Shown: one piece after another, positions 9,801 through 62,641 of the stretch
Layout: each line of letters begins with the position of its first letter
Position numbering within the stretch: the first letter of the stretch is position 1
Source: Macrostomum hystrix
Lineage: Eukaryota > Animalia > Platyhelminthes
NCBI GenBank assembly: GCA_950097015.1
Contig: CATNEN010000010.1
Coordinates: forward strand, 2,914,001 to 2,978,000
Direction: 5' to 3'
DNA length: 64,000 nucleotides
The notes under the pieces: generated by a model
Told to the model about the DNA's origin: nothing
The model's input: only the letters and a program-made list of their open reading frames with translations
Databases searched by the model: none
Program-made: the position numbers and the translations under genes

Positions 9801-12800
9801 GAAAGGTGAGATGTAGGGAGGAAGATCTGATGTAGGGAGGAAGGTCTGATGTAGGGAGAATGGTGAGATGTAGGGAGGAAGGTGAGATGTAGGGAGGAAG
9901 ATCTGATGTAGGGAGGAAGGTCTGATGTAGGGAGAATGGTGAGATGTAGGGAGGAAGGTGAGATGTAGGGAGGAAGGTGAGATGTAGGGAGGAAGGTGAG
10001 ATGTAGGGAGAAAGGTCTGATGTAGGGAGGAAGGTCTGATGTAGGGAGGAAGGTCTGATGTAGGGAGGAAGGTGAGATGTAGGGAGGAAGGTGTGATGTA
10101 GGGAGGAAGGTATGATGTAGGGAGGAAAGTAAGATGTGGGAAAATTGAGGTGATATGTAGGACGAAAGAAGGTGGGATCTAGGGAGGAAGAAGGGTGGGA
10201 TGTAGTTTGGAGGAAAGGTGAGATGTAGGGACTCAGAAAGGCTAAGGCAGGACGGGACAAGCAGGAGGGAGCCATGGAGAGGTTCCGAACTGCACTGGGA
10301 ACTTGCGGAATGCGATCAAGAGTCGCCAGGCTGTCCCGTAGTTTCGTCCGACCCCAGGGGAATTTTCGGAGGCGCTGCGCTGCGCCAGAGGCGGAATCAT
10401 CTCGTCCACCTCCCCATTACTTTTTTTGCCATGCAGTTTCATTATTCCCATCGCCTCGGCCTCCTCCCATCTGCTTCCTGACTCCCAACTCCCCGTTGTC
10501 TTTGCTCCCCATTGGCACAACTCCGCCTGCTCGGAGCAGTATCGCCCAGTTACTGACTGGGATAGATAAACTCGTTGCGGCCGGTGTCATTACACGGTTT
10601 GGTTGGCATTCTCTCGGCGGGATATCGACTCGGATCTTGGCTTCTGTAGACTTCTCAAGCTTGTCAGCCCTGCTCAGCTCATTTTTTATCGGGCTTTGCC
10701 TGACTCTCTGGGTACTCAGCCGGATGCTGCTGCTGCTGCTGAGCTGTATTGGCAGAAGTGTAAAAAACGTGCAAAACACAGCGCAGAGCTATTTTTCCTC
10801 ATCCAACATTTGAATAAAAGAGGACTGGCAACTGTGTGCAACATCTTTTTTTAGTCTTCCGTTTCAGCGGTTTCACGGCTCACAGCGGCTTCTGGATGCT
10901 GCTTTTTAAAAGGAATCATTGCTTGAAACACTGTACAAAAACTAGAAAACTAAATGAGGCGGTCAGAAAATCAGCACACCCCCTTAGAGGATTTTCGCGA
11001 TTAACTATACGTTACACTGGCTAGATTAGCAGCTAGAATTGCAGGTGGTACACAGCAGCTAGAATTGCAGATGGAACAGCAGCTAGAATTGCAGATGGTA
11101 CAGCAGCTAGAATTGCAGATGGAACAGCAGCTAGAATTGCAGATGGTACAGCAGCTAGAATTGCAGGTGGTACAGCAGCTAGAATTGCAGGTGGTACACA
11201 GCAGCTAGAATTGCAGATGGAACAGCAGCTAGAATTGCAGATGGAACAGCAGCTAGAATTGCAGATGGAACAGCAGCTAGAATTGCAGATGGAACAGCAG
11301 CTAGAATTGCAGATGGAACAGCAGCTAGAATTGCAGATGGAACAGCAGCTAGAATTGCAGATGGAACAGCAGCTAGAATTGCAGATGGAACACAGCAGCT
11401 AGAATTGCAGATGGAACAGCAGCTAGAATTGCAGATGGAACAGCAGCTAGAATTGCAGATGGAACAGCAGCTAGAATTGCAGATGGAACAGCAGCTAGAA
11501 TTGCAGATGGTACAGCAGCTAGAATTGCAGATGGAACAGCAGCTAGAATTGCAGATGGAACAGCAGCTAGAATTGCAGATGGAACAGCAGCTAGAATTGC
11601 AGATGGAACAGCAGCTAGAATTGCAGATGGAACAGCAGCTAGAATTGCAGATGGAACAGCAGCTAGAATTGCAGATGGAACAGCAGCTAGAATTGCAGAT
11701 GGAACAGCAGCTAGAATTGCAGATGGAACAGCAGCTAGAATTGCAGATGGAACAGCAGCTAGAATTGCAGATGGAACAGCAGCTAGAATTGCAGATGGAA
11801 CAGCAGCTAGAATTGCAGGTGGTACAGCAGCTAGAATTGCAGGTGGTACACAGCAGCTAGAATTGCAGATGGAACAGCAGCTAGAATTGCAGATGGAACA
11901 GCAGCTAGAATTGCAGATGGAACAGCAGCTAGAATTGCAGATGGAACAGCAGCTAGAATTGCAGATGGAACAGCAGCTAGAATTGCAGATGGAACAGCAG
12001 CTAGAATTGCAGATGGAACAGCAGCTAGAATTGCAGATGGAACAGCAGCTAGAATTGCAGATGGAACAGCAGCTAGAATTGCAGATGGAACAGCAGCTAG
12101 AATTGCAGATGGAACACAGCAGCTAGAATTGCAGATGGAACAGCAGCTAGAATTGCAGATGGAACAGCAGCTAGAATTGCAGATGGAACAGCAGCTAGAA
12201 TTGCAGATGGAACAGCAGCTAACATTATATATGTAAAGCCATGAACTGTTTACTTTCTCCGAATTGTGATATCTCGGCCTCGCATTGTACTTCGCATTGG
12301 CCTCCTGGCCTAATGCGCCAATTGCATGACTGTGATGGAAAACGCGAGATGTATAGATTAGGAAATAAAAGAAGAAAAATGAGAAAATGTTTCGAGCTGC
12401 CCTGTTCGCGGCCGCAATTCTATCTGCAGTCACGCCACCAAGAAGACAAAGGGTTGCACAGAGAGGCACATGTGGCCAGCATCTTTGAGCTTTTTTCAAA
12501 ACCTCTGCTTTGATTCTTTTCGAATGAGCATGAGGATTGCTGCTTTCACTTACGAGTAACTGACCAGCTAATAATAATGATACTTCTCTATTGCTACTGC
12601 AGTTCCTTCTCAAGCTCTTTCGTCACTGCGCAACATTACTCTCGCCTGTTTCCCATCTACCTTCCTCTCACCTGTCTCCCGCCTCTACCTTCCTCTCACC
12701 TGTCTCCCATCTCCACCTGCCTCTCACCTGTCTCCCATCTCCACCTTCCTCTCACCTGTCTCCCATCTCCACCTGCCTCTCACCTGTCTCCCATCTCCAC

Positions 12801-15800
12801 CTGCCTCTCACCTGTCTCCCATCTCCACCTTCCTCTCACCTGTCTCCCATCTCCACCTGCCTCTCACCTGTCTCCCATCTCCACCTTCCTCTCACCTGTC
12901 TCCCATCTCCACCTGCCTCTCACCTGTCTCCCATCTCCACCTTCCTCTCACCTGTCTCCCATCTCCACCTTCCTCTCACCTGTCTCCCATCTCCACCTGC
13001 CTCTCACCTGTCTCCCGTCTCTACCTGCCAATCAGCCCACCAGTCGGCGGCGGTGCAGGCCGATCAGCCGCGCGTCCAGAGCCGACAACCGCCGGCCGGA
13101 TGCGACTTCCCCGAAGCTCTTCGCCGACACGGGCCGTGGGCGTTTCAGCACCACCTTGCCAGGGACTCGGCCACTGGGGAGCGCCTGCAGCCGCCTGCCG
13201 ACGAGTTGCGCTATGCTCTGGCCAGCGTTTCCATGGCAACCGGACGGCCGGAGCATCCGCTGGGCCGGCTGAACATTCACCGCCGTCTGGTCCTGCCCAG
13301 CGGCGACCAACGCGGCGGTTACCGCGAATCAGCGCCAGACGAGCCGCAGGAGGCGCTGGAGTGCCTGGAGATGGCGGCGACCAATCAGAGGCGGACGGAG
13401 ACCTTCCTGACTGCGCACTACCACTCGGACAGGTGGGATTTCAGCCCTTATTGCTGTCTAGTGTCCAGCTTTTATCCAACCATAAGTAGCCTATATCCGA
13501 CCACATCTTGTCCTTATCCAGCCATATAAGCCTTTATCCAACCATATATTGCCCTTATCCAGCCATATATTGTCTTTATCCAACCATAAGTAACCTTTAT
13601 CCAACAATATCAAGCCTTTATCCAACCTTATCTAGACTTTATCCAACCATATATAGCCCTTATTCAACCATATCAAGCCTTTATCCAACATTATCTAGCC
13701 ATTATTCAACCTTGAAAGATTCCATAACCTTGGCAAATTCTGATTGGCTGGCCTGTCTCTAGCCTGACTCTGCTAGCCACACCCCAACCACCTTGCAGAG
13801 GCACGCAGCAGCTGTCCGGCTACCTGTGCGTCACCTTCGAAGCCAAAACCGACGAACGCACCAGGGCTGTGTTCGCTATCACCGTGTACTTTGGTAATTC
13901 AGTCACCTGAACTCTGAACTGCGAGCCCCCTGTGACGTCACTCACCGCTCTCGATCCGCCGAACATTTCAGGCCAGGTGGAGCCGCACCGATTTCCAGTT
14001 GCGAATTGTCCGGTGGGGGAGCTCAGCGACAAATGGGCCTGGATTCGTGAGCTGGGGCCGCATATTTACCTTCTACAGAAATAACATTGCTATCTCACAT
14101 CTTACCTGAAAATATGAAACACTAATAATTTAGCCGAACCGAAAACAGCAAACTTCCGCGACCTTTCGTGTCCGTTCACCTTCTCCTACCGGGCCGTCCT
14201 GGACTGGATCGACGCCAGGGACCGGACCCACCCGCGTCCCGTTGTGAGTGCCATACGGACAATTTTTTATTTCCACGGCTGAAACTCACCCACCCCACCT
14301 CCGCTACCCCCACCCCAACTCGGCTAACCCCCGCCCCAGCACCGCTTTCCCCCGCCCCACCTCCGCTAACCCCAACCACAACCACACTAACCCCAACCCC
14401 AACTCCGCTAACCCCAACCCCAACTCCACCAACCCCCACCACAACTGCGCAGAACCTGCGATCCGGCCTGGGCACCGTGCAGGAGAACACCTTCACCCTG
14501 GTGCAGAGTCAGTGCGTCCGTGGCACCGGCATGAGCTGGCTGTTCTACAACGTGCCTCCCGGCTCGCTGCTGCGGGTAGCTCCGCTCTCACTGCTCGCCA
14601 GCCTGCCGAAACAGGATTCGATTCGTGAGTTCCCACTGTCAGGCATCTTAATTGATTAGGGCTTTAGACCTGATAAAGGCGTCATTTCTTTATAGAACCG
14701 AATTTCTCCCCTAATGATGTGCCGAAAATGGCCGCTATTTCAGAAGCCTCAATTAATTAGTCCCAAACAGACTCCCCAGTAGGAGTGAGGTCCCATCCAT
14801 CCTCCGCCTCTTGGCTGTCGAGTCTGCACTTGAGATTTCGCCTAATCACCAGCTTGAGGTGATGCGGGGGCGGTGAGGTGGCGGCTTTAATCGCTTTCAA
14901 TTTGCAGAGCAGCTGAAGCTGACTTTTGATGACGGCTGCAGGGCTCTTAAGGCTGAAGCATTTAATCTGGGCGCTCATAAAGTTGGAAGTGTCCCGTAAA
15001 ACTGAAGCCGCCGAACAATTCTCACTTATCATTCCTTCCGTCTTTTAGAAAATATTCTTTCAGAAAATTGAGAACTAAAATAATTAATTTCCGAATAGAT
15101 AAGAATCTTAATTGTCATATATCTTTCATCCATCATACGATATCGGCTGCGATTCGAAATAGTATTTTTGCTGCTTTTATGCTGCGATATTTGATATACG
15201 GCTATATTGATCAGAGCGATTCTCACTTTAGTTCCTGCTGCGATTCTCGCTATGGTTCCTGCTGCGATTCTCGCTATGGTTCCTGCTGCGATTCTCGCTA
15301 TGGTTCCTGCTGCGATTCTCGCTATGGTTCCTGCTGCGATTCTCGCTATGGTTCCTGCTGCGATTCTCGCTATGGTTCCTGCTGCGATTCTATATCTTCG
15401 GCTTCGGTTCTAGCTGCGATTCTATAGCTTCGGCTTCGGTTCTAGCTGCGATTCTATAGCTTCGGTTCCTGCTGCGATTCTATAGCTTTCGTTCCTTTTG
15501 CAATTCTATAGCTTCAGTTCCTGCTGCGATTCTATAGCTTCAGTTCCTACTGCGATTCTATAGCTTCAGTTCCTGCTGCGATTCTATAGCTTCAGTTCCT
15601 ACTGCGATTCTATAGCTTCAGTTCCTGCTGCGATTCTATAGCTTCAGTTCCTGCTGCGATTCTATAGCTTCAGTTCCTACTGCGATTCTATAGCTTCAGT
15701 TCCTGCTGCGATTCTATAGCTTCAGTTCCTGCTGCGATTCTATAGCTTCAGTTCCTGCTGCGATTCTATAGCTTCAGTTCCTGCTGCGATTCTATAGCTT

Positions 15801-18800
15801 CAGTTCCTGCTGCGATTCTAGCTACGCTTCTACGCTCGTACTAGTCTATGGCATTCATAAAATACTGCTTGGTCCAGGTTTTGCACTTTTAAGTCGAGTC
15901 GAGTCCAGCTGACTCTCCTTGTTCTGCGACTGGTTCTTCGTTTCACTTTCTGCCGCCCCAGGCTGGCTGAGCTGCTCATTTTGTGGCCTCAGAATATTGC
16001 TACAATATCCCATGGCGTGAGTGGCCGCAGTCACCAGCAGGTCACACTGGGTCCTCTTCCTTGCGCTCCCAGAAATCAGTGCGATTTTTTATTTCATGTA
16101 AAATTCGGCCACTCACGGCTGAAGTGGATGCTTGAACGCATAAAATCTGTTGAAAGCGATGATTGAAGTAGTGAAAAAAAGAAGTATTATCTGTACTTGC
16201 TACTGCTAGTACTATACCTAGCTGAGTGGATAAAAGAAAAATAATTATTAATGAACTTAAAAAATGTCCACAGAGGTGGACATGAGGTGCGCCGGCTCCT
16301 GGATCAAGCACAATGGCTCGCTGATGTATCACTTCACACTGCTGTACAACCCACTGCTGCCAATGTCTATATATACTCTGGTAAGGGCGAGATGAGATGA
16401 GACGGGACTGGTTGGGGAGGGATGGGACTGGTTGGGAAGGGATGGGACTGGTTGGGGTGGGATGGGACTGGTTGGGGAGGGATGGGACTGGTTGGGGAGG
16501 GATGGGACTGTTTGGGGAGGGATGCGACTGATTGGGGTGGGATGCGACTGCTTGGGGAGGGATGGGACTGGTTGGGGAGGGATGGGACTGTTTGGAGAGG
16601 GATGGGACTGGTTGGAGTGGGATGGGACTGGTTGGGTGGGATGGGACTGGTTGGGAAGGGATGGGACTGGTTGGGGAGGGATGGGACTGGTTGGGGAGGG
16701 ATGGGACTGGTTGGGGAGGGATGGGACTGTTTGGGGAGGGATGCGACTGATTGGGGTGGGATGCGACTGCTTGGGGAGGGATGGGACTGGTTGGGGAGGG
16801 ATGGGACTGTTTGGAGAGGGATGGGACTGGTTGGAGTGGGATGGGACTGGTTGGGTGGGATGGGACTGGTTGGGGAGGGATGGGACTGTTTGGGGAGGGA
16901 TGGGACTGCTTGGAGTGGGATGGGACTGTTTGGGGAGGGATGGGACTGGTTGGAGTGGGATGGGACTGGTTGGGGTGGGATGGGACTGGTTGGGGTGGGA
17001 TGGGACTGGTTGGGGAGGGATGGGACTGGTTGGGGAGGGATGGGACTGGTTGGGGAGGGATGGGACTGGTTGGGGATGGGAGTGGAGTGAAGATGAGCAT
17101 ACAATCGGCTCTCCCATTCCAGTCATAATCCTGGGCCTTGCTCCTCACTCCGAAATCCCACCAGAGAATTCCCGCCCAGAGCTACGAGGATGATTCGGCG
17201 GACTACGCGGCGGAGTTTCCCTCAACAGGCGAGTTCCGCCGGCAGCGCGCGCAGCAGCAGCGGCACCAGTACCGGGAGGCCATGCTGTATGAGGGTGCGG
17301 CTGAGGTGCTGGCGACCGGCTGGCAGTCCGGCCTGCTGCCCGCCAGGGGCCACCTGCTCAGCCGGGACGAGGTGGGCCACGCCCGGTTCCGCCTCACCTA
17401 CAGGCGATCGCGTGAGAGCCCGATTGCTAGGCTTGATGGGATTTCAAGAATTGGTTATGGGATTTCACAGACTGACGATGGGATTTTACAGACTGACGAT
17501 GGGATTTTACAGACTGATGATGGGAGTTCCCAAATTTCTGATGGGATTTTCCAAATTTATGATGGGATTTTCCAAATTTATGATGGGATTTCCCAAATTT
17601 ATGATGGGATTTCCCAAATTTCTGATGGGATTTACGAAATTTCTGATGGGATTTCCCAAATTTATGAGGGGATTTCCTAAATTTATGATGGGATTTCCCA
17701 AATTTATGATGGGATTTCCCAAATTTATGATGGGATTTCACGGATTGATGATAAGATCATTCAGATTTTGGAGGGATTGCAAATATCGACAATGGGATTT
17801 TTCCAGTGGGCGACTGCGACAACCATATTCGCGGCTGCCTGTTCAGCGAGAGCGCCCACCTTGGCGCCTCCATGCAGCTGAGGGTTCGCAACTGTCGCTT
17901 GAACTCCGAGTACGGCGACAGCCCCTGCCAAAGTGAGAGAATTGTCGAGACTGGCGTCCCAAATTTTAATTTGACAGCCTACTTTTCCAACTACATGAAT
18001 ACAAGTTGTCCGTCCCCGATCCCCCTTAATGAACATTTGCCACCTCGTCCAGCCCCCAACCCCTTAAATGTACACTCGCTAGCCCCAACTCTCTACTCGT
18101 AAATGTACATTCGCAAGCCCCAACCCCCCAAATTTACGTTCGCCACATCGTCCAGAAAGACAGATCAATTCGATACTCACTACTAACAAGTCACTACTTC
18201 CACTCCGGTCAGCACCCTGGAGTACCTCCAGTTGCTCCTTCACTGAAGCCGTCACAGGCAGCTGGGTCCGGCCGGGCCGCGAAGGCGGCTCCGTGGACAT
18301 CGGTGTGCGGACAGCTGGTGCTGAGGATGGGCAGCGCCGCCGGTTGCAGCCGCTGCCGTGGCCGATGCCGGGGAGCGGCATGCCGGACTCGACAGCCAGC
18401 AGTTTGACCCTGCGGCGCTGGGCCAGCTCTGGCAGGACTCTCGGCGGCATAGTGCTGGACGACTGGCCGACCGCTGACGAGGAGGCGTTATTCACCTGCC
18501 GGCGCACCTTTGGCCTGGCCAATCCTGGCATCCCGGACGGTGTCTACGTGATGCAGAAGGTGCCGGACGGCAGGTGGTGAGTGACATTAGAGCCGCAACC
18601 AGCGAGTAGGCAATTCTGCCCATTTCGCTGACTCCTGAGCACACACGCACACATATACCGTACACAGGCACACGCTCAGAAAGGTGTGTACATCTGCCCT
18701 GACTTTCTCATCGTCAGGCAGTGCACACTTCTACTGTGCCTTGGAGGGTGGCCCTCAAGGGCGTAGATTCCACGACAAGTCCCCAAGCCTTCTCTTGCGG

Positions 18801-20954: not shown

Positions 20955-21490
20955 TCCTGAACAAAAAGCGGAATGGGCTAGAGACACGCTGAAGAACCCC
21001 TGAAGAAACAGCGGAATGGGCTAGAGACACGCTGAAGAACTCCTGAACAAACAGCGAAATGGGCTAGAGACACGCTGAAGAACCCCTGAACAAACAGCGA
21101 AATGGGCTAGAGACACGCTGAAGAACTCCTGAACAAACAGCGGAATGGGCTAGAGACACGCTGAAGAACTCCTGAACAAACAGCGGAATGGGCTAGAGAC
21201 ACGCTGAAGAACTCCTGAACAAACAGCGGAATGGGCTAGAGACACGCTGAAGAACCCCTGAACAAACAGCGGAATGGGCTAGAGACACGCTGAAGAACTC
21301 CTGAACAAACAGTGGAATGGGCTAGAGACACGCTGAAGAACCCCTGAACAAACAACGGAATGGGCTAGAGACACGCTGAAGAACTCCTGAACAAACAGCG
21401 GAATGGGCTAGAGACACGCTGAAGAACTCCTGAACAAACAGCGGAATGGGCTAGAGACACGCTGAAGAACTCCTGAACAAACAGCGGAAA
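20955..21490. repeat. Minisatellite, 43-bp unit, ~12 copies
   Basis: Unit GCTAGAGACACGCTGAAGAACTCCTGAACAAACAGCGGAATGG. Confidence 0.95.
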
Positions 21491-48984: not shown

Positions 48985-49590
48985 GGAGAAGGACAGGGGA
49001 GATAAGGAGATAGGGAGGAGAGGAGAGATGGGGAGAAGGAGAGGGGAGATGGGGAGAAGGAGAGGGGAAATGGGGAGATGGGGAGGGGAGACGAGGAGAA
49101 GGAGAGGGGAGACGAGGAGAACGAGAGGAGAGATGGGGAGAAGGAGAGGGGAGACGAGGAGAAGGAGAGGGGAGACGAGGAGAAGGAGAGGGGAGATGGG
49201 GAGAAGGAGAGGGGAGATGAGATGAGGAGAACGAGAGGGGAGACGGGGCGAAGGAGAGGGGAATCAGGGAGAAAGAGGGGAGACGGGGCAAAGGAGAGGG
49301 GAATCAGGGAGAAGGAGAGGGGAGACGGGGAGAAGGAGAGGGGAGATGGGGAGATGGGGAGAAGGAGAGGGGAGACGGGGCGAAGGAGAGGGGAATCAGG
49401 GAGAAAGAGGGGAGACGGGGCAAAGGAGAGGGGAATCAGGGAGAAGGAGAGGGGAGACGGGGAGAAGGAGAGGGGAGATGGGGAGATGGGGAGAAGGAGA
49501 GGGGAGACGGGGCGAAGGAGAGGGGAATCAGAGTGGAGAGGGGAGATGGGGAGAAGGAGAAGGGAGTCAGGTAGAATGAGAGGGGAGAAT
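48985..49590. repeat. GA-rich (polypurine) degenerate minisatellite
   Basis: Motif GGGGAGAAGGAGAGGGGAGA(T/C) repeated. Confidence 0.9.
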
Positions 49591-50324
49591 GAGAGGTGGG
49601 AGAGATTCGCAGACAGTTATCACAGAGGAAAAACAGCCCCATAAAAGACAGTCGCACTGGCGGGTACCTGTGTGTGCTTTAGTGTGTTATTGTTTAGATG
49701 CCGGACCGGCTATACGGGTGAGTTCTGAGGTTAACAGAGGCGCCAGGCCGTGACTTCATCGGACCTAGACATTGTGAGCGGAGCGGGCGGCGAGTTTGTC
49801 AGTTCGTTATTTGGCGTGGAAAGCACTGAACATGATCCCGAACTGCCGACTGCAGAACCCTGAGTGACAGCTCTAACTCTCAACTGGCCGATGTTGAAAA
49901 AATATTTGGCGAAACTGGCTGCGTCTCGATACGTTTCATATCAAAAAGGTATGCATGAGCATGAGTATGTATTGTGCATATAACTCGGTACATAGAGCAC
50001 TAGGCTAGGCTCAAACTAACATGAGGACACAACAAAACAAATGAAAGCAAAACTGCTTTATGCTAATGACCTAGTAGGCTTCCTAATTCACAAAAATGGT
50101 ACAACAGTTGGATGAAGTGAGCAGTTCTCACAGCCAAAGACAGAAACGACTGGGTGCACAGAGGCAAGCAGCTGTACTTGAATAAAAACTAACATTTTGC
50201 TCTTCAGATCCAAGAAGAAAGAAAAACCGCCAAGGAAGAAAGCGAACTCATTGCTAGCCACTTGAATACTTAGACTTCACTCTCTAGCTATATATCTACT
50301 TACACTGACTAGTTCTGGGGCTAG

Positions 50325-50865: not shown

Positions 50866-52067
50866 TAACAATCCGACCAATTCTTTGATCTAAGCGGCTA
50901 GACTAGCAACTCATTCAATTATTTCATTAACAATTGAAGCAATGAATGAGCACAAAAATAAAGGGCGATTGAGACAGAAAAAGAAAGATTGGAAGACGTC
51001 CTCGAACGGTACAATGATAGCAAAAAGGCACCTTTTGATCTAAATAAATGAAGAGTAAAAATCAACCAATTATTTAATTCGGCTTTTGTGAAATTTTAAT
51101 CTAGGGACTCTGGTGGTTTCCTAATGTAAATGCACTATTGTAAATAAAGTGACCATAGTTAATGCACTACATTAATTACAGGTAAAAATCGGTATACAAA
51201 AATACTAACCTGTGTCGGTTTGATTAAGAGTGCAGTAAGAATCGAAAATTGAAACTAGAAACAATACTGGCTCGCGTTCTAATTAGCTTTGAGTTATCGG
51301 ATTAAAAACTGTGTTTAGTATACTACTCACTACTGACACTGCTAAGTAGTTAATTTGAAAAAACCTTTAATATTAGTTAGGAAGACCATGGGCGTATTTG
51401 AAAGAGAAGAAAGAGTGACCATCAATGTAACAGAGCGAAAAAAAATAAAACAATGGAATCACACAGCAAATACAGAAAGCACAGCAAAACAAATACAAAA
51501 AAGAGTTCTTAAGGACTAACGAATAAATCAACTTACATAGAGAATAAAAGAACAAAATAGTTGTGAATCACAAAGAGTCAATCCAATTTAACTCTGCTAA
51601 TGAACAAGAGATGATGCAAAAATAATACAAAAACTAAAATATCCGACAAAATGTCTGAATTTGACTACTTAAAGCAGGAGATGCGCGCATGTGCGGATAA
51701 AAAGGGAATCGACGCGCACAGTCTATCACTTAAATAGTCTAAAAATAGCAATAGCGGCTAGAGCGATAGGCGAAAACAGAAACTCGCATGCAGAGTTCGC
51801 ATCGTTGTGGCGCAACTAAAACTATAATACGATTACGTAATGACAATTCGCACACTAGCCGCTTCTTCGGAAAGGCAAGGAAAGGCCGACAGAGGCGAGG
51901 CTCAATGTGACTCAGAAAAAAATGAAATGAATAAAAATATTCCGTCAGGCTGCAGAATTGACAATCTAGAACCCTCGATAGTTTTAAGTGGCAGAAATTT
52001 GGTCTAAACACAAAAATTACTTCAGGGGCGGCTTTTAAAAGGCCATCAAGCCGCGCCACAACGCCAG

Positions 52068-55000
52068 TCACATCAAACCACCGCCGACGCCAACGCCGAC
52101 ACCGCCGCGAAGCCTCACCTGCCCGACTGCGGCGCTCGGCTTTAGCGGCAGGCCGGAGGCGCCCCCGCTGCTCCCGAGGCCGGTGGCGAAGCCAGGCGGC
52201 GGTGGCGGCAGAGGCGGCGGCATGGACTGATGATGCTGGCCCTGGAGGTGGGAAATTGCGGGGAAAAAAAATCCAGCCGGAGCTGCAGCGGCCGTACCTG
52301 ATTGGCTGAGCTCGAGACCACCTGCCGGGTAGATTCCGCCCGCGGCAGCCGCAGCAGCAGCGGCCGCCGCCGCCGCCGCCATGTGGTCGGAGCTGGCGTG
52401 GCCCATCAGGCCGGATGCGGCGCTGGCAGCCAGCAGGTAGGAATAGTCGGCAGCTGACACGATCGGATAGTTCAAAATCTGGGCTGCGGCGGCTGCGGCT
52501 GCGGCGTCGTTGCTGGCACTGGCGGCCTGCTGCAGGAGCTGATGGTGATGATGAGCCTGCTGCTGCTGCTGATGCGCCGTCAGGCCGTGCAGGCCACGCG
52601 CCAGACCTGGGGCCAGAACGATGGGAGAACCACCGGCGGCGGCCGCGGCTGCTAGTGGGTGGTGCGCCGGCAGGCGTAGAAACTGCGGAGCCGCCGCGGC
52701 TGCCGACAGGGGCAGCCCAGCGTGTCCGGCGGGAAACAGCGAAGGACCACGGCTCGCTTCTGCGGAGCCAAAGTTTGGTTCTCAGAGTTAAGAGGAGCTC
52801 GATTTGTATTTCTATCTTGATTTTTAGTAATTTTCTGCTTTAACACAATGCAGACACAAATATTAGGAAAATGAAAAATACCGAAAAAAAAACTCGACAC
52901 CGGCCTACTAACAAGTAGGGTGTTGAGGAGCTGGCCATAAAAAGTTGAACTAAAACAATAATTTAACGCCCTCACTGGGCGCTGGAATGCAAGCGCATGA
53001 CTTCTCAGCTGTGGAAAGCCAACCCCTGGGCCCGTGAATTATGGCGGAAGGGCCGCAGAGCGGAAAGCCAGAGAAAAAGAAGCAGAAGACAGTGAAAGAA
53101 ATTATGAAAATCAAGGCGCCGGTCAAATGTGAAATTGGAATTCGCTGCGGAATCGGTGGGCCGTGACGCCAACCCGCAAGGCGGCAGGTCAGGCAGGCAG
53201 GCATTCAATGATCAAACAGGCGGGAACAAGCTTTACTGGGCCTTGCAAACTCAGCTGAGAATCTGAGAATCTGCCCGGTAAGAACTGGCCATTATTTGCT
53301 AGCGGAATTTCTGCAAGTTGATCGGCTTGACCAGCTGCCCGCCCTATGAAGATTGGCAACAATATGAAAGGTCCCAGAGAGTCGGACTGGTGTCCGCGGC
53401 TCGGACACAACAGATAGGCATAATTGAGTGTGTCAGCTGTCGGCTGAAAAATATCCTAGAATTTTGGAACTTCTGCATCTCGCAGACGGGTTGGGAAGCA
53501 TTTTCGGTAGGATTTCTAAACGCCATTTGGGAGGCTGTGTTGCTGGGGGGTTGGGGCAGACACATGCGGGCCAGGGCTTCTGCACGAGACTGAAGGAGAC
53601 ACAGACGGGAAGTGCCCGGCAATCACAGTCTTTTAACACTAATAGGCTGCTGTGCAAGGGAAAGCTGGGGGATTATGGAAACAGCCCGCCAACTTCCCTC
53701 AGTTTTTTTACCACCTCTTCAAACTTGGCGCGACCCGCCCTGACAAAATCTGGGCCCGGTGAGGGGAAAAAAACTGCCTGGCTTTGGGGAGACATTTCCC
53801 CTTCCTGTGCCGGCCCAGACCCACTGATTTCCTCTCCGGGTGGAGAAAGCGCAGTCCAGGAGAGGGGCGCCGGGGTTCGGATAAGTTCGCAGCAGCTGGC
53901 GCATTGGAGAGGGGCTGGAGGCTGGGCGTAGCATGCAGCATGCATATCTCGCAGGCAGTAGGGTGTACAATGATGACACAACAGTTAGGAGAGCTGGGAG
54001 CGGAATAGAGTTTAAAAAAGGTATAACAAACAAGTGAACAGTGCTAACTGTGTTATGCAATCGATTAAACGGAGCGGATCTGTGCGTGGCGACATGCGCA
54101 AGCAAGGCAGGACCAAGTCAATTGAGGCATGGCTGTCTGCATGCTGCCTTACCTCACTGCATTAGCATAAGCCTAGCTAGTCAGCATAGATTTGCTAATT
54201 AAGGTGACAAAAATTATGAGGAAATGCTACAGGCGGAGCAGACAAGGGCCAGGCAATGCATGCAAATTTTCTTGCCCATTTTTGGTTCATTTTAAGTGTG
54301 AGCAGATGCGAGGAAATCAAGTGATAAGTGCAAGGCAGGACATGCTAGCACAACAATGCTTTCACAACTGTGGTGAATGGGGGCACAGGGGGCGCTGGCC
54401 ATCGCGGGAGCCGTCGAGTGCCGGCCGGCCACTTACGCAATGCTGCATTGGACTGCATGGAGGCGGCGGCGGCGGCGGCAGCAGCGGCGGCAGCTGCCTG
54501 ATTGTCGCCACCGCCGGCCTGCGAAGAGGGTAGGCCGGCGGTGGCTGAGGAGGCGGAGCAGCCGCCCTTCTTACTGGTGTCCCGGTAAGTGCCATTGATA
54601 ATGGCCAGCTCCATCAGCTGCTTTTTCTTCAAGTCGTCTTCACCGTCGGGCTGTTTTATTGCGGCGGTGCAAAAACCGATCAGATATCATATAACTAGAG
54701 CCTCTGAACTGACAAATCAATCAACTCGAGTCATAAGCTTAGCATAGATACTAGCTAAACTAGCCCAAACATCTCACATACATTCCACCTCCAGGCATCG
54801 GAAAGCAAATAGACTGCACACACAGTCACTGGCCCACGTGACACACATTCAGGGGGGCCCCGAGTCCATGGTTGCCACCCAAGCGAGTTTTTCTATTGCC
54901 AACAAAATGTTTGGAGTTCAACGCAAAAAATTAATGCCTTTTTTTACTATTCTCAGTGTCTGAGATTGTCACAGCAACTAAAGGCTTAGAAGAGAGAGGG

Positions 55001-58000
55001 CAGAGAGCGAGCAAATAAGCACGCTAGAGCACGCATTGTGCTGGGGTGCAGTTGCTGCCCACTCGGTCTCTTTCTCTCTCTTGACTAATCTGCAGCACGA
55101 ACTAGCTAGCACACAGGCAAAAACTAATGAATGGAAAATGAGCGAGGCCTTGAGCAGGGAGGGGGGCAGCACGCTGAGGCGAGCCAGGACTCCACCCCAC
55201 CCCCCAGCTCATCAACTGGGCTGATAATTTGTCTTTGTGTGTGAGTCTCTGTTGTTGAATTTCTGAGATTGAATCTGGGCCAACTCTCAGAGTTGCAAAA
55301 TGGAAAAACTCTCGGCTAATTTTTTTTTATTCAGCAGTTTTAGTGCAACGCACCGAGTGAAGGAGAGAGAGAGAATGGCGTATCGTGTTACCAGGGGAAT
55401 AGAAAGCAGAATTCATATCGGTTGACTGAGCCACCACACAGTCAGTCGCAATCTACACAAAGAATTACAATTCGAATAAATTCCTTTGAAAATAAAAACG
55501 ATTTTTTGAATAGAAATTTAGAAATTCATGGAAATAATGAGCAGTCAACCGCGATAATGTTACTCGATATTTGTGACATTTCATATCAGCGATAAATACC
55601 TGGTACAGTTCTGTTTAACTGATTGCAAAATATAACAAAAACCTAGCCATGTGATTTAGCGTTGTACACTATTTCCAAAATGTTATTGTTACACACAGGA
55701 GTGTTACGCTTGTCATAATGAACTCTAGTACGCATCTATTGTTACAAAAAGCGTGTTAAATAAAAGCCTGAAATCTGAAAAAAACAATCGATTATTGCGC
55801 AATAACATGTGGATACTTTACCATTGAGCACAGCAACCTCCATGAGCTGCATCTGCTTCAGCTTGTCCTCGCTCTCTGGCTGCACAGAAATAAAGATGAA
55901 ATAAAGAATAGAGATGTTTAGCTTATTTAACAATAATTATCTCAGCAGCACACTGAACCCTCCTTTTAAACTTTCTTAGCTGCTTCCTAAGTAGACAACA
56001 AAATTAGAGTGAACTCAAATTCCTGGACTCTGGATTTCTGTATTCTGGCTGACAGGGTTGTGATCTTTCGGATATGTGAGGCTTAAGGATTGTGAGGCTT
56101 CAGGATTGTGAGGCTTAAGGATTGAGGCTCCAGGACTATGGGGCTTCAGGATTATGAGGCTTCAGGATTGTGAGGCTTCAGGATTGTGAGGCTTCAGGAT
56201 TGTGAGGCTTCAGGATTAAGAGACTTCAGGATTAAGAGACTTCAGGATTGTGAGGCTTCAGGATTGTGAGACTTCAGGATTGTGAGACTTCAGGATTGTG
56301 AGGCTTCAGGATTGTGAGGCTTCAGGATTAAGAGACTTCAGGATTAAGAGACTTCAGGATTGTGAGACTTCAGGATTGTGAGGCTTCAGGATTGTGAGAC
56401 TTTAGGATCATTGATTGTGAAGCGGTGAGTTTTTCATACTGCATTTTCTAGTCCTAGCAGAAAATTCAGCTTCATCAGTTAAGCCATCTTTCCGGTTTAA
56501 TCTAAAAAAAATTATCTAATAAACTTCTCAATCAATGAAAAATCGCTGGGCGACTTAGTGAGGGCCTGCAAGCCACATTCCATTGTGCGCGCACTTATTC
56601 ATTAAAAAGAGAGCACACAATAGAGATTATTTGCTGCAGAGTGCAGCTCAGCCAATAGCCTTGGGCGCCAATTGTGATTTGAGTCTGTCTACTCACCTGC
56701 CTGGAAATGAGGCGAGGGGTCAGGATGAGAACCCCCGGTGGGCACAGAAATGGGATAAGAATAATAGCTTGGGGATGAGGAAGAATTCAGGAAGCTGATG
56801 CCAAGATGAAGGGATGCAGATTGGACGGGATCTTAATTTCTAAAAGAAGGCAGACTTGGAGCACAAATCTGGGAGTAGAGACCTGAGACATTGCAATGGC
56901 CCAGTGAGCTGGCTGGAGCAAGAGAAGGCCCGGGATCTGGGCAGTTTCCGGGACGGCCCGGAGATGGGAAGAATGGGGCCGGGGGATTTGCGAGTTTGCG
57001 CCAGCATTTCCCATCGCCAAACTCCCAGGTTGGTGGGTGGGGGGTTGGCCGCAGTGCCATCCAGGCTGCAGCAGTGATTTTGCATAAAGAATGACAAAAA
57101 TGGCGCCTACAGCTAAACTGTTTCTGAGAGAAGCTAAAGAGAACACATAAATTTCTGCTCTCATGTCTCATTGCTGTCAGACTTAGATATAAAGCGAATT
57201 TCCAGCATCCAGTGTATCTAAGGCTTTTCATTGTGTAAGAATTTTACTTACGAACTAGCTAGCATGGCCGCATTCAACAAATTAGGCGCCATATGATAGT
57301 TTTGCAAGCTGTGTGCGAGTGGCGCATGGCTTCTGACAATGCCGACAACACAAAAGCAAACAGCAGCATTCTCTGGCCTCTCAAACTAATGGCTTTACAA
57401 GCGTATTCATGGAAGCTATTTGAGTTCAAATAAGATTTATTATGGCCAGAAAATGTGTAGCCAAAGCTCAACAAAAACAGCGGCAACTTCAAGTGACTAG
57501 AATAAAAGGCATCTAGAAACTGCACAGAACACTTTTCTTAGCCATTTTACCCTATCGCCATCTATTTAGCAGCGGGTGAGACATGCCCAGGAAAACTGTG
57601 ACCCGCAGCTACCCGGCCTCACTGGGAGACTCTCTGATTGGAATGGGATCGATAGACGCCCTCCGTTGCGGGCTTGCGAAAGGGATTTGGGGATCTCAGA
57701 GGAGGAGGAGGAGTGAGTTGGGGCGGGCGGCGGGGCTTTGCGCAGAGATAAGCCCGAGCCGATGGGAAAGGGACCAGAATAGTTTTTGGAGGCCAGTAAT
57801 CCCGCCTGCAAATTAGGGGGATATTTGACTATGGCTCCTTGACCATAGCACAATGGCCCGGGACCCCTGGAATTCAGCAACTAAACGACAGCAGCAGAAC
57901 TTTGGAATCAGAGACCGGCGCATGTCCGAGAAACTTATCCCCAACGGGATTGGAAGACTGCAAGCGGCGTTAATTAAGGAAAGGAGCAAAGTGCTGAAAT

Positions 58001-61000
58001 AAACTTGTGTCGGCTTTGCTCAAATTGCTTTCTCAAAGAGAGTTGGGACACGAAGGCTAGGAGGCTGGACTGGGAGGCAGATAGCATCGGTGCGGAGCTG
58101 AGTTCGCTAGGGAAATTTTCCCCATTCCTGTCTGTACCCAGTAGAAGCCCGCTTTCTTGAAATTTCAAACCCAAACCTGTGGCCGCTTTATATTTCTGTT
58201 GAGATCTTAGAATTAGATTACTTCCCAGTTGGGGATGCCTGAGCTGGGGGAAAGGGATCGAACCAAGTGTTAAGTAGGCGATAGACGGGGCTTTCTGATC
58301 TTGCTAGTAGCCACAGTCCGAGCTGTCGCTTCAGGGGGTTCATGGGGAGTCTGTGACATCAGTCGCTAATGCCTAATGGAGTGGCAGGATCCGGGTGGAG
58401 TGGGGGAGTGCGGGGCGTGCCTTTTCCCGCCTCTGTCACTCTCGCTTACTCGCACACAGCGGCAGCCCGTGCTCACAAGACAAGCTCCCAATTTCTAGCA
58501 TGTTCTCAGCGCTTCTCATAATTCTATCGAGCAGAATTTTGCGCATGGGAGCTGCTATGGGCGCCATAAGCTGATCCTGATAATATCACATGTGCTTAAT
58601 GCTGGCTGGCAGCATGACCGAGTACGGCCTAAGGCGCACGATTAGAATCTGTCGGATCTGTGAATTGTCGGATCTGTGAATCTGTCGGATCTGTGAATCT
58701 GTCGGATCTGTGAATTGTCGGATCTGTGAATCTGTCGGATCTGTGAATCTGTAGGATCTGTGAATCTGTCGGATCTGTGAATCTGTCGGATCTGTGAATC
58801 TGTCGGATCTGTGAATCTGTCGGATCTGTGAATCTGTAGGATCTGTGAATCTCTCGGATCTGTGAATCTGTCGGATCTGTGAATCTGTAGGATCTGTGAA
58901 TCTGTCGGATCTGTGAATCTAAACGATCTGTGAATCTAAAGGATCTGTGAATCTAAAAGATCTGTGAATCTAAAGGATCTGTGAATCTATCGGATCTGTG
59001 AATCTAGAGGATCTGTGAATCTTTAGCTCTAGAAATCTGTAAGATCTGTGAATCTATCGGATCTGTGAATCTGTAGAATGTGTGAATGAAGAGCCCATGG
59101 TATCAGACCCCAGTGACCAAGCAAGGCCAGCTCTACCGAGGATTGAGGTGAGATGAGATGGGATCATAGCAACCAATCGAGTGAGCTGGGCGTGATAATC
59201 AGGGTAGGTCCTGACAGCTGATGAAGCCCACCCCAGTTAATTAGCACACTCGCTGGAGCAGTAGGGTCAGCAACGTCCTGGTGGAGGCTGGGCCAGCCGG
59301 AGGGTGAAATGAAGACAGAGGGGAGGATCGGAGTACAACTGGAGCCATAGTCGGCTGTTTCATTTCCCGCCCTAGGCATCACATTGGTGACAGTGGCTCT
59401 GTTTTAAAATCATAGACAATATTAGTTAGACTAAGTAATTCAGTACAAAATATTGGTTGCATAAATAATTTTACCGATAATAATATATTCCGAATAGATG
59501 GGCTTGACAATGGACGGACTCACGCACACTTGGGCACTCCGATGAGAGAAAATTAAAGATGAAGAAAGATGAAGCTGCGCCTAGACAAGAGATGTGAGAG
59601 TGGGAGCGCTGGGTGTAGCGGAGTGGGGCTTTAAGTCATGGAAAATTCTGGGATCTCTTCCCGGACTATCAAGCCTAATCACATGTGATTGTTGGGCGAA
59701 AAGGCTGGGTGGGTGAATGAGACTCCTGCGAATCTCTCTAAGATAAATTTAGACCAGAAAGGCGGCGAGTCCCCGGGGTGCTCACCAACAAGTCGACTGT
59801 TACAAGCAGCCCCACATCCAAAGTTATTTTTAAAAGGCCACCGCATTTATCTATAAGACTTTTATGCCTAGCCACCTAATTCAATTTTCACCATATTCGA
59901 TCGGTATATTACTAGCTCAATATTCACAGTCTATCAGAGAACTCATGTTTTTTACGGGGTCTTAATGAGTCAATATTCCCAGTCTCTCTAGTGGGTCATA
60001 ATGAGTCAATATTCTCAGTCTCTCTAGTGGGTCATAATGAGTCAATATTCCCAGTCTCTCTAGTGGGTCATAATGAGTCAATATTCCCAGTCTCTCTAGT
60101 GGGTCATAATGAGTCAATATTCCTAGTCTCTCTAGTGGGTCATAATGAGTCAATATTCCCAGTCTCTCTAGTGGTCATAATGAGTCAATATTCTCAGTCT
60201 CTCTAGTGGGTCATAATGAGTCAATATTCCCAGTCTCTCTAGTGGGTCATAATGAGTCAATATTCCCAGTCTCTCTAGTGGTCATAATGGGTCAATATTC
60301 CCAGTCTCTCTAGTGGGTCATAATGAGTCAATATTCCTAGTCTCTCTATTGGGTCATAATGAGTCAATATTCCCAGTCTCTCTAGTGGGTCATAATGAGT
60401 CAATATTCCTAGTCTCTCTAGTGGTCATAATGAGTCAATATTCCCAGTCTCTCTAGTGGTCATAATGAGTCAATATTCCCAGTCTCTCTAGTGGGTCATA
60501 ATGGGTCAATATTCTCAGTCTCTCTAGTGGATCATAATGGGTCAATATTCCCAATTTCTCTAGTGGGTCATAATGAGTCAATATTCCCAGTCTCTCTAGT
60601 GGGTCATAATGAGTCAATATTCCCAGTCTCTCTAGTGGGTCATAATGGGTCAATATTCCCAGTCTCTCTAGTGGGTCATAATGGGTCAATATTCTCAGTC
60701 TCTCTAGTGGTCATAATGAGTCAATATTCCCAGTCTCTCTAGTGGGTCATAATGAGTCAATATTCCCAGTCTCTCTAGTGGGTCATAATGAGTCAATATT
60801 CCCAGTCTCTCTAGTGGGTCATAATGAGTCAATATTCCCAGTCTCTCTAGTGGTCATAATGAGTCAATATTCCCAGTCTCTCTAGTGGGTCATAATGAGT
60901 CAATATTCCCAGTCTCTCTAGTGGATCATAATGGGTCAATATTCCCAGTCTCTCTAGTGGTCATAATGAGTCAATATTCCCAGTCTCTCTAGTGGATCAT

Positions 61001-62641
61001 AATGGGTCAATATTCTCAGTCTCTCTAGTGGATCATAATGGGTCAATATTCCCAGTCTCTCTAGTGGGTCATAATGAGTCAATATTCCCAGTCTCTCTAG
61101 TGGGTCATAATGAGTCAATATTCCCAGTCTCTCTAGTGGTCATAATGAGTCAATATTCCCAGTCTCTCTAGTGGGTCATAATGAGTCAATATTTCCAGTC
61201 TCTCTAGTGGGTCATAATGGGTCAATATTCCCAGTCTCTCTAGTGGGTCATAATGAGTCAATATTCCCAGTCTCTCTAGTGGTCATAATGAGTCAATATT
61301 CCCAGTCTCTCTAGTGGGTCATAATGAGTCAATATTCCCAGTCTCTCTAGTGGGTCATAATGGGTCAATATTCTCAGTCTCTCTAGTGGGTCATAATGGG
61401 TCAATATTCCCAATTTCTCTAGTGGGTCATAATGAGTCAATATTACTTGGGATGTGTTACACTGCATTCATACAGAAGCAAGAATAAAAATAATAGGTCC
61501 AACCGAAGCTAACAGTGCATATTACGATGTCATTGACTTCTCTAAAATGTCTCAGAGCCAGTGGTCTAATTTTCCAACTAACCTAAAGTCCGATCCTGTC
61601 TACCCCATTTTCCTTGCTTCTTGAGAAGAAGATGGACTCAAATGATCGTTAAAAAGCGACCCGTCGGTATCGAATTTTCGGCGGCCTGCACCCCACCAGC
61701 CCGCGCGGCCAGCCAACCCCAGGGGAAACGGCAGCGCACCGATAATCAATCTGAACTGCGCAGGATGGACGATGGCGGAGGGTGGGTGGCAGGGATGACT
61801 GGCCAGCGAAATGTCGAAGCTACAATGCGTTTAATGCGAGCTGACACGCTCGCCTGGGGCCCGCATATTTTATTCGCTTATAATTCAATTCGCAACGACA
61901 CGGCTAAAACGTTAATCATAGGAGGATTAGTTGCTTGCTCTAAAGATTTAAAGGAGGATTAGTGCACTGCTCTATCTAATGAAAAATTCTGGTTTGGCTG
62001 ATGAAATCAACAAATGACACTAAAATTATTAATAAGCGTACGACATTGTCATGTTTAGTAAGATTTATTAATAGCAAAATACACTAGCATGCAAAAACAC
62101 AACTAATACAACTAATTTACAACAAGTAGGGCATACAACTCACCATTTTAACAGCCTGTTCTAGGAAAGCTTTGATCTCTTCAGCGGCCCGCTTCGCTTT
62201 TAACTCGGCGCGATTTTGATAATCCTCAACGCAGATTAGTACATGCAGCTCTTCAGACAAGTGCTCCCAGTTCGGCTTGCCACGGTTCTGATCCTCCTGA
62301 GTAAGCAGTAGAAAGTACTCTGTCAGTTTGCCTAACTCTTTAAACATCAAGGCTTAAAGCCTGCAACATATCAAAGCGAATGAGTTTTACCTTCTTCTTG
62401 TCGCGCATGGAGCCCTTGCCACGGACCATTATCTTGCAGTCCAGGTCAGTCTCCAGCTGCTTGGCTGTCATACCCCGTGGTCCAAGCAGTCGGCCAACAA
62501 AGTTATAGCTTGGATTGTCCTTCACAGGAATGAAGACTTTCTCCTGCACAGTCACCATGGGGCCCTCGCCCTCAGGCAGCTCATCAGAGGCACGCTTGGC
62601 GCCATTGAAATGGAACAGCTGGCTCCGAACTCGTGTGATCT
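52068..62641 (-). CDS. QKI: Quaking/How/GLD-1-like STAR KH-domain RNA-binding protein (5'-partial; QUA1 exon beyond the window)
   Basis: Exons: 62641-62391 (EITRVR...[19 protein letters not shown]...[15 protein letters not shown]), 62296-62144 ([23 protein letters not shown]), 54650-54437 (QUA2: [21 protein letters not shown]) and 52759-52119 (or read-through to the stop at 52068). Phases are consistent. A candidate last exon at 49859-49731 is uncertain. Confidence 0.9.
55822..55879 (-). CDS. Second, duplicated QUA2 exon of the Quaking-like gene
   Basis: Strong acceptor TTTATTTCTGTGCAG, then [20 protein letters not shown], then donor GTAAAG. Same start phase as the canonical QUA2 exon. Confidence 0.8.
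56085..56405. repeat. Minisatellite, 16-bp unit
   Basis: Unit CTTCAGGATTGTGAGG, with variants. Confidence 0.92.
58645..59085. repeat. Minisatellite, 17-bp unit, degenerating to the right
   Basis: Unit TCTGTCGGATCTGTGAA. Confidence 0.92.
59963..61443. repeat. Minisatellite, 36-bp unit (35-bp variants), ~41 copies
   Basis: Unit GTGGGTCATAATGAGTCAATATTCCCAGTCTCTCTA. Confidence 0.97.

Follow-up and report, generated by a model that had tools for sequence, protein, structure and literature searches.

A 64,000-nucleotide stretch of the genome of the flatworm Macrostomum hystrix (contig CATNEN010000010.1, positions 2,914,001 to 2,978,000; hereafter the window, numbered from its first letter) carries on its minus strand the orthologue of quaking/held-out-wings (QKI/HOW), a gene of the STAR/GSG family and its QKI/HOW/GLD-1 subfamily. 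This gene probably contains an ancient, tandem-duplicated and mutually exclusive pair of exons for the QUA2 helix, exon A and exon B, from which two overlapping sets of RNA targets are to be expected. In the mechanism that we propose, the KH exon, ending in phase 0, would join either A or B, and the chosen exon would then join a common exon C; transcripts with both or neither would lose the frame and be removed by nonsense-mediated decay (NMD), leaving only the one-exon transcripts to encode protein. Exon A would be the default and B the regulated choice.

Two QUA2 exons behind the KH domain

KH exon 2 (62144..62296, 51 codons) ends in phase 0 at 62144 with the donor gtgagt and is followed by two candidate partners. 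Exon A (55822..55879; boundaries ag/CC..AATG/gtaaag) is an alternative QUA2 exon of 58 nucleotides, or 19 codons and one nucleotide, and is the main form in RNA. After an intron of 1171 nucleotides comes exon B (54437..54650; ag/CC..TTGC/gtaagt), the canonical QUA2 exon and the minor form in the RNA seen, in which QUA2 is followed by an Ala/Gly/Ser-rich spacer over a total of 214 nucleotides (3x71+1). Exon C (52298..52759), rich in Ala, Gln and His, takes one nucleotide from A or B and has its donor at 52298. Re-read from the sequence, the exon coordinates, splice sites, translations and the phase-0 donor agree with those of a first-pass annotation of the window.

The two exons agree at 11 of 19 residues (12 of 20 with the glycine read through A's donor, which the first-pass annotation had counted) and at 40 of 58 nucleotides. 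Scored with BLOSUM62, A reaches 63 on the first 19 residues of B, compared with 29 at the next-best site in the six frames of the window and a maximum of 36 in 100 shuffles. In PDB searches, exon B alone matches residues 179-205 of QKI in 4JVH (E-value 3.5e-6) and exon A alone residues 179-198 (E-value 0.016), with only STAR chains matched in both cases; a Pfam scan of exons A, B and C singly gave no match, these exons being too short or low in complexity. The likeness of A and B is thus far above chance, and both encode the QUA2 helix.

A and B have the same phases, 0 at the start and 1 at the end, as is found in mutually exclusive pairs of tandem homologues at one position, and because both are 3n+1 nucleotides long, transcripts with both or neither lose the frame. 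Local translation of the joined exons shows that the frames of KH-A-C and KH-B-C are open, while KH-C frameshifts to a stop. It also reproduces two predictions of the first-pass annotation, namely that KH-A-B stops after three codons of B and that read-through of A's donor meets a stop at 55742. The earlier proposal that A splices in frame to the exon beginning at 52759 likewise stands, except for the glycine placed at the end of A: the junction codon is G/AA, that is Glu, and the A isoform reads ..AVLN-E-A-S-R-G-P.. instead of ..LNG.

The RNA evidence comes from Logan contigs of four runs (X1-X4) of a single study, in which the exons are present at 100% identity; the GCN repeats at 52335-52389 and 54453-54499 were left out of the placement. 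The joint between A and C (55822 to 52759) occurs in one contig per run in 4/4 runs, at depths of 57-99, and the loose end of this contig at 55880 in X2, X3 and X4 reads ..CAAAGCTTTCCTAGAACAGGCTGTTAAAAT, the last 30 nucleotides of KH exon 2. Thus, KH-A-C is the main transcript and A is an ordinary coding exon. Two of the junctions that the first-pass annotation had named, 62144 to 55879 and 55822 to 52759, are therefore seen; another, 55822 to 54650 (A to B), is absent among the contigs of the four runs, which cannot prove absence, and the same contigs contain no read-through of A's donor.

These observations bear directly on the earlier suggestion that A acts as a poison exon or NMD switch, included with B or read through in order to destroy the message. 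Both of the stops described above are what such a switch would need, but the dominant contig of each of the four runs joins A to C in frame, neither the A-B joint nor read-through of A's donor is found, the NCBI gene models of M. lignano use A, and the protein sequence of A is under purifying selection and conserved as far as flukes and tapeworms (see below). We consider this function of A very improbable. The data from Macrostomum also suggest the reverse of the first-pass view in which B is the default and A the oddity.

Exon B is found only in X1, in a 316-nucleotide contig of depth 7.7 that covers 54363-54651 and carries 27 additional upstream letters that are not placed on the intron. In the same run the A contig starts exactly 28 nucleotides before the end of the KH exon, and the B contig has 27+1 upstream letters. 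In the Logan graph, which we take to be built with k=31, a fork between KH-A and KH-B predicts 27+1 letters, and an A-B junction would give 30. The first two bases of A and B being the same, a KH-A/KH-B fork gives the contig ends observed, which suggests that B's acceptor is used from the KH exon in X1. Low-depth intron contigs are also present in this run. Between 52200 and 52580, short apparent joints and many loose ends belong to other transcripts with CAG/GCN repeats, placed at 90% likeness, and not to the splicing of this gene.

Several points weigh against mutually exclusive, productive use of both exons. The contig form of the RNA drops rare transcripts and gives no isoform ratios, and it derives from one study; the sole B-containing contig retains 74 nucleotides of the downstream B-C intron; no KH-B-C transcript is present among the Macrostomum contigs of the four runs; and two UniProt models of M. 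lignano, A0A1I8GFL6 and A0A1I8HVJ9, which are of the B type, read through B's donor after B. In-frame use of B in Macrostomum and NMD of the aberrant forms are steps that we infer.

According to the same contigs, the protein can end in two ways. Either exon C is joined to exon D (49694..49764), as the loose end at 52296 maps to 49733-49762, or its donor is read through, as in contigs covering 52216-52316 and 51900-52245, to a stop at ~52068; one contig extends more than 1 kb past this stop. The read-through extension (52068..52297) provides an alternative C-terminus without a nuclear signal. Exon D, short and C-terminal, ends ..LRTHPYSRSGI before its stop codon, a tail of the STAR nuclear-localisation (RxHPYxR) type that is confined to the isoform joining D to C and is also present in the M. 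lignano protein P0151. Directly past the stop of exon D, a long CT-rich tandem repeat (49300-49600, units like CTCCCCTCTCCTTCTCC) presumably lies in the 3' untranslated region.

Upstream of these exons, KH exon 1 (62391..62641) starts in phase 1 and encodes the end of the QUA1-KH linker and the KH core with its GPRG loop, which identifies a maxi-KH domain. Positions 62391-62639 match PF22675 (KH-I_KHDC4-BBP) in Pfam with an E-value of 4e-10, and in an exhaustive HMMER search the 83 residues of this exon are 98% identical to the M. lignano KH protein P0001. The QUA1 exons fall past the end of the window; the orthologue P0151/P0268 carries PF16544 (STAR_dimer).

Conservation of the exon pair in flatworms

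The orthologous locus of M. lignano has the same layout, with exon A at 11245-11302 (58 nucleotides) and exon B at 12555-12762 (208 nucleotides). Between the two species the exons align and the introns do not, so that A stands out as a 65-nucleotide island of 91% identity. Synonymous changes exceed non-synonymous ones in KH exon 1 (26 and 2), KH exon 2 (20 and 3), exon A (5 and 1, the latter a conservative Lys to Arg) and the QUA2 part of B (9 and 0, with 28/28 residues identical). From this comparison, the protein sequence of A is under purifying selection. Two matches lie within the otherwise unalignable introns, 53631-53649 against 16237-16255 of the M. lignano locus (19 nucleotides, exact) and 59668-59694 against 7242-7268 (27 nucleotides, 93%); they could be regulatory elements or chance.

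A-type proteins of M. lignano are represented at NCBI by PAA64328, PAA80226 and PAA84600, which join KH-A-C-D and read ..AVLN-ETNR..LRAHPYSRPGV. A region-restricted word search with the A-type QUA2 gave matches confined to two M. lignano clusters. The species also has a paralogue (Mlig020226, locus positions 14545-14933) with a well-kept 58-nucleotide A exon; its B exon, ~200 nucleotides downstream of A and 136 nucleotides long, is strongly diverged (..CQLAEFALLKGNFR..) and has the same TTGC/gtaag donor.

This paralogue, together with the dominance of A in the RNA and the A type of all three NCBI models, is what one would expect if A were effectively constitutive in Macrostomum and B a decaying or seldom-used relic, the pair being functional only in other flatworms. 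However, exon B of the window gene and of its orthologue still has an open frame, its two splice sites and a length of 3n+1, its QUA2 part has accumulated 9 synonymous and no non-synonymous changes, and its acceptor appears to be used in X1. We therefore regard decay of B as quite unlikely.

Beyond Macrostomum, genomic DNA shows the order KH-A-B-C in Schistosoma japonicum (A 58, B 202 nucleotides) and Taenia solium (A 58, B 181 nucleotides). Over the five flatworm loci, A is always 58 nucleotides long, and B varies (214 in the window, 208, 136, 202 and 181 nucleotides) and is always 3n+1, a constraint that is sensible only if B splices in frame to C. A-type QUA2 sequences, of the form PE..D.LKQ.QLME[LV]AVLN followed by [DE]-x-x-R and without GTY, are found in proteins of Schistosoma, Fasciola, Calicophoron, Paragonimus, Taenia and Hymenolepis, and B-type sequences in Paragonimus, Echinococcus, Hymenolepis, Taenia asiatica and the monogenean Cichlidogyrus. 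Two Hymenolepis models, P0014 and P0234, differ little (92% identical overall) except in the swapped segment, and B is joined to C in cestode and fluke gene models, such as P0161 of Echinococcus. The A-type ..LN-[DE]-x-x-R end is absent from the ~350 QKI/HOW/GLD-1 proteins retrieved from other animals, almost all of which keep ..NGT[YF]... The nearest relatives of one further A-type protein, P0080, are fluke proteins.

These comparisons also speak to a further reading of B, namely that in Macrostomum it is an unproductive choice: the B-C intron would be retained, giving a truncated protein or a detained or degraded RNA, and inclusion of B would regulate the A isoform, as a valve for dosage or autoregulation. 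The retained intron does bring a stop after 32 codons, the sole B contig crosses B's donor, the A-C contig does not branch where exon C begins, and the two UniProt models of M. lignano show B with read-through. Yet the QUA2 part of B is identical in 28/28 residues between the Macrostomum loci despite its 9 synonymous changes, the lengths of B (214, 208, 202, 181 and 136 nucleotides) stay at 3n+1, a rule without consequence unless B joins C in frame, and the cestode and fluke models do join the two. In addition, the read-through tails are not conserved, no AATAAA or ATTAAA that would allow alternative polyadenylation after B is present in the B-C intron, and the low-depth intron contigs of the same run suggest ordinary pre-mRNA. 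An unproductive role for B is, in our judgement, unlikely.

With these alternatives weighed, the A/B pair is real, ancient and conserved to flukes and tapeworms. The first-pass view of old, selectively maintained alternative QUA2 exons is borne out by the frame logic, the RNA contigs, purifying selection and the flatworm-wide conservation, and the duplicated exon for which it had proposed a search in relatives is present in M. lignano, its paralogue, S. japonicum and T. solium.

RNA-reading residues of the two helices

The QUA2 helix sits on KH and reads the 5' half of UACUAAC-type sites. In the crystal of QKI with RNA, L194, A198, T203 and Y204 touch the first A of ACUAAC, K190 and L197 touch C, and K190, Q193 and L197 touch U (PMC6847458). 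In GLD-1, Lys313 hydrogen-bonds C, and K313A causes a 65-fold loss of affinity; Ala321 and Arg328 hold A; and Arg314 with the Gly308-Thr309-Asp310 loop forms a pocket for the preceding U that is lost in G308E (PMC4081071).

Measured against these contacts, exon A keeps the Asp, Lys, Gln, Leu, Ala and Asn of QUA2, and the Arg is supplied by exon C (QKI D187, K190, Q193, L194, A198, R205). The opening codons of exon C (..ASR) finish the QUA2 helix of the A isoform, and an Arg is restored in this way in every flatworm (EASR, ETNR, DKDR, DKER, ESDR). In a 65-sequence alignment that includes the A types, there is no variation at the QUA2 Asp, Lys, Gln, Leu, Glu and Asn, and at least 90% of the sequences have the Arg. 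At the position of QKI Leu197 the A type has Val in Macrostomum and Leu in the parasites; the consistent changes are Ser, Asn or Asp at GLD-1 Gly308, Gln at Arg314, Gly to Asp or Glu, and small polar residues at QKI T203/Y204.

When the A-type STAR domain of M. lignano is modelled with AlphaFold (mean predicted local distance difference test score 82.6), the helix runs from ..RLKQ.. across the A/C junction to the Arg and then gives way to disorder. The best structural matches of the model are QKI with RNA (4JVH) and GLD-1 with RNA, at template-modelling scores of 0.72-0.82 (4JVH 0.72/0.82), and the full QKI STAR domain is matched. On this model, A is predicted to encode a complete QUA2 helix, altered at the end that reads the 5' nucleotides.

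The A isoform would then have a compact QUA2, its last turn (Glu-x-x-Arg) provided by the first codons of exon C, and the B isoform would have the canonical ..NGTYRD helix followed by a low-complexity spacer of ~45 residues ahead of the C-terminal region. Exon A retains the residues that bind C and A of the motif and those that pack on KH, and has substitutions among the residues of the first-nucleotide pocket and of part of the second. From the residues that differ, the two isoforms would be expected to have a common preference for the core CUAAC and to differ in affinity and in strictness at the two 5' nucleotides, so that one gene would yield two proteins with overlapping target sets. The residue comparison thereby makes the switch in RNA specificity proposed in the first-pass annotation plausible.

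The size of this difference is open to question on several counts. A U in the first position gives GLD-1 only a 2-3-fold gain (PMC4081071) and the main RNA contacts are kept in A, so the difference in specificity may be small; the real difference between the isoforms could be the spacer inserted by B; and the AlphaFold helix was guided by an alignment of mostly canonical proteins.

A precedent for loss of QUA2 contacts within the family is Sam68, which has Gln at the GLD-1 Arg314 position, has lost the equivalents of Lys313, Ala321 and Arg328, and binds only the KH-read UAAA (PMC4081071). Exon A resembles the QUA2 of Sam68 and T-STAR, which has lost RNA-reading residues, in carrying Gln at the Arg314 position. 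Unlike Sam68, it keeps the equivalents of Lys313, Ala321 and Arg328, and hence it should still read most of the 5' half-site.

Splice choice and comparison with other systems

At four loci, the pyrimidine content of the acceptor is 0.70-0.80 for A and 0.50-0.70 for B, and A is the richer in all four, which fits A, with the better polypyrimidine tract, as the default and B as the regulated exon.

As to how the choice would be made, steric or U12-type exclusion was ruled out, since the A-B intron measures 1171 nucleotides and all sites are GT-AG with U2-type donors. Competing RNA structures were dropped as an explanation because inverted repeats are at chance level and the introns cannot be aligned with M. 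lignano. The splice-site check found no U12-type sites in the A/B pair and the comparison with M. lignano no conserved intron pairing. Exon B at 54588-54612 (GGAGCTGGCCAT..) is complementary to the B-C intron at 52927-52951 (12 nucleotides, perfect) and 53282-53295 (14 nucleotides, 93%), probably by chance, given its palindromic TGGCCA core, and an 18-nucleotide, 78% complementary pair lies upstream of A and upstream of B. As for autoregulation by way of QKI sites, ACTAAY does not occur on the gene strand from 52759 to 55880, and its count over the window is unremarkable (62 compared with 49 expected). Two ACTAAT motifs on the minus strand at 61926-61963, 32 nucleotides apart in a short direct repeat (CTAATCCTCCT) ~180 nucleotides past the KH donor, resemble a bipartite quaking response element.

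Mutually exclusive tandem exons that alter a binding surface are known from FGFR2 (IIIb/IIIc), SNAP-25 (5a/5b), tropomyosin and PKM. As in those genes, A and B are tandem homologues of equal phase, of which each transcript would carry one, since with both or neither the frame is lost. The pair differs from them in being very unequal (58 and 214 nucleotides) and in that A's donor lies in the relic Gly codon of ..NG(T), with the next exon completing the helix. Within the family, QKI-5/-6/-7 and How(L)/How(S) are likewise splice isoforms, and the two tails of the window gene parallel theirs, the nuclear-localisation tail corresponding to QKI-5 and How(L) and the read-through tail to QKI-6/7 and How(S); in contrast to them, the window gene swaps the RNA-binding domain itself by means of a duplicated exon. 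According to a review (PMC9786888), the isoforms described differ only C-terminal to the STAR domain. A vertebrate-like QKI sequence among the Logan data (P0345) reads ..LMELAIL-KEQAAPR.., its QUA2 ending before NGTYRD, which could come from an alternative donor within the QUA2 of some vertebrate.

A parallel exists in molluscs. Isoform models of oyster, mussel and snail each contain one of two QUA2 versions (one of them ..KKMQLMELAILNGTYRDSK..), for example X2/X8 compared with X5/X9 of the qki.L-like gene of Crassostrea virginica, and Crassostrea angulata has tandem QUA2 exons of 94 and 127 nucleotides, both 3n+1, separated by a 99-nucleotide intron. As in flatworms, the KH exon of mollusc quaking is followed, at the same phase-0 position, by two tandem 3n+1 QUA2 exons, but both of these copies, unlike flatworm A, retain the full ..NGTYRD helix. 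The C. angulata intron (21159-21256 of that locus) contains a perfect TACTAAC, ~40 nucleotides before the second acceptor and ~55 after the first donor, which is both the branch-site consensus and a QKI/SF1 site; steric exclusion or autoregulation is possible for the oyster pair.

Over few informative positions, flatworm A and mollusc copy 1 share Glu2 and Leu18 (Macrostomum also Met10) with vertebrate QKI, and, at similarly few positions, Lys/Arg10 and Ile18 are common to flatworm B, mollusc copy 2 and arthropod HOW. A bolder proposal is that the two exons constitute two RNA-binding heads that read the first two nucleotides of UACUAAC differently and control two regulons, and that the pair dates from the common ancestor of flatworms and molluscs or earlier; we put this forward tentatively, as doubtful on present evidence. 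Lineages with a single exon may have kept different copies of the ancestral pair.

The full-text literature searched, whose coverage leaves out most subscription journals, contains no description of alternative QUA2 exons in any STAR protein; both isoforms are already in databases as unremarked models. The finding is a new example of a known device, mutually exclusive exons, in a family where it has not been described. QKI, HOW and GLD-1 have major roles in controlling splicing, mRNA stability and translation in muscle, glia and germline, and descriptions of their isoforms have dealt only with the C-terminal tails. Here an expressed exon swap in the RNA-binding domain has been kept across deeply diverged flatworms, including the human parasites Schistosoma and Taenia, with a parallel in molluscs. 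The A/B pair offers a natural experiment on the C-terminal turn of QUA2 and the first-nucleotide pocket, for which M. lignano is a tractable model, and the same gene may yield proteins that read RNA differently across a large part of the animal kingdom.

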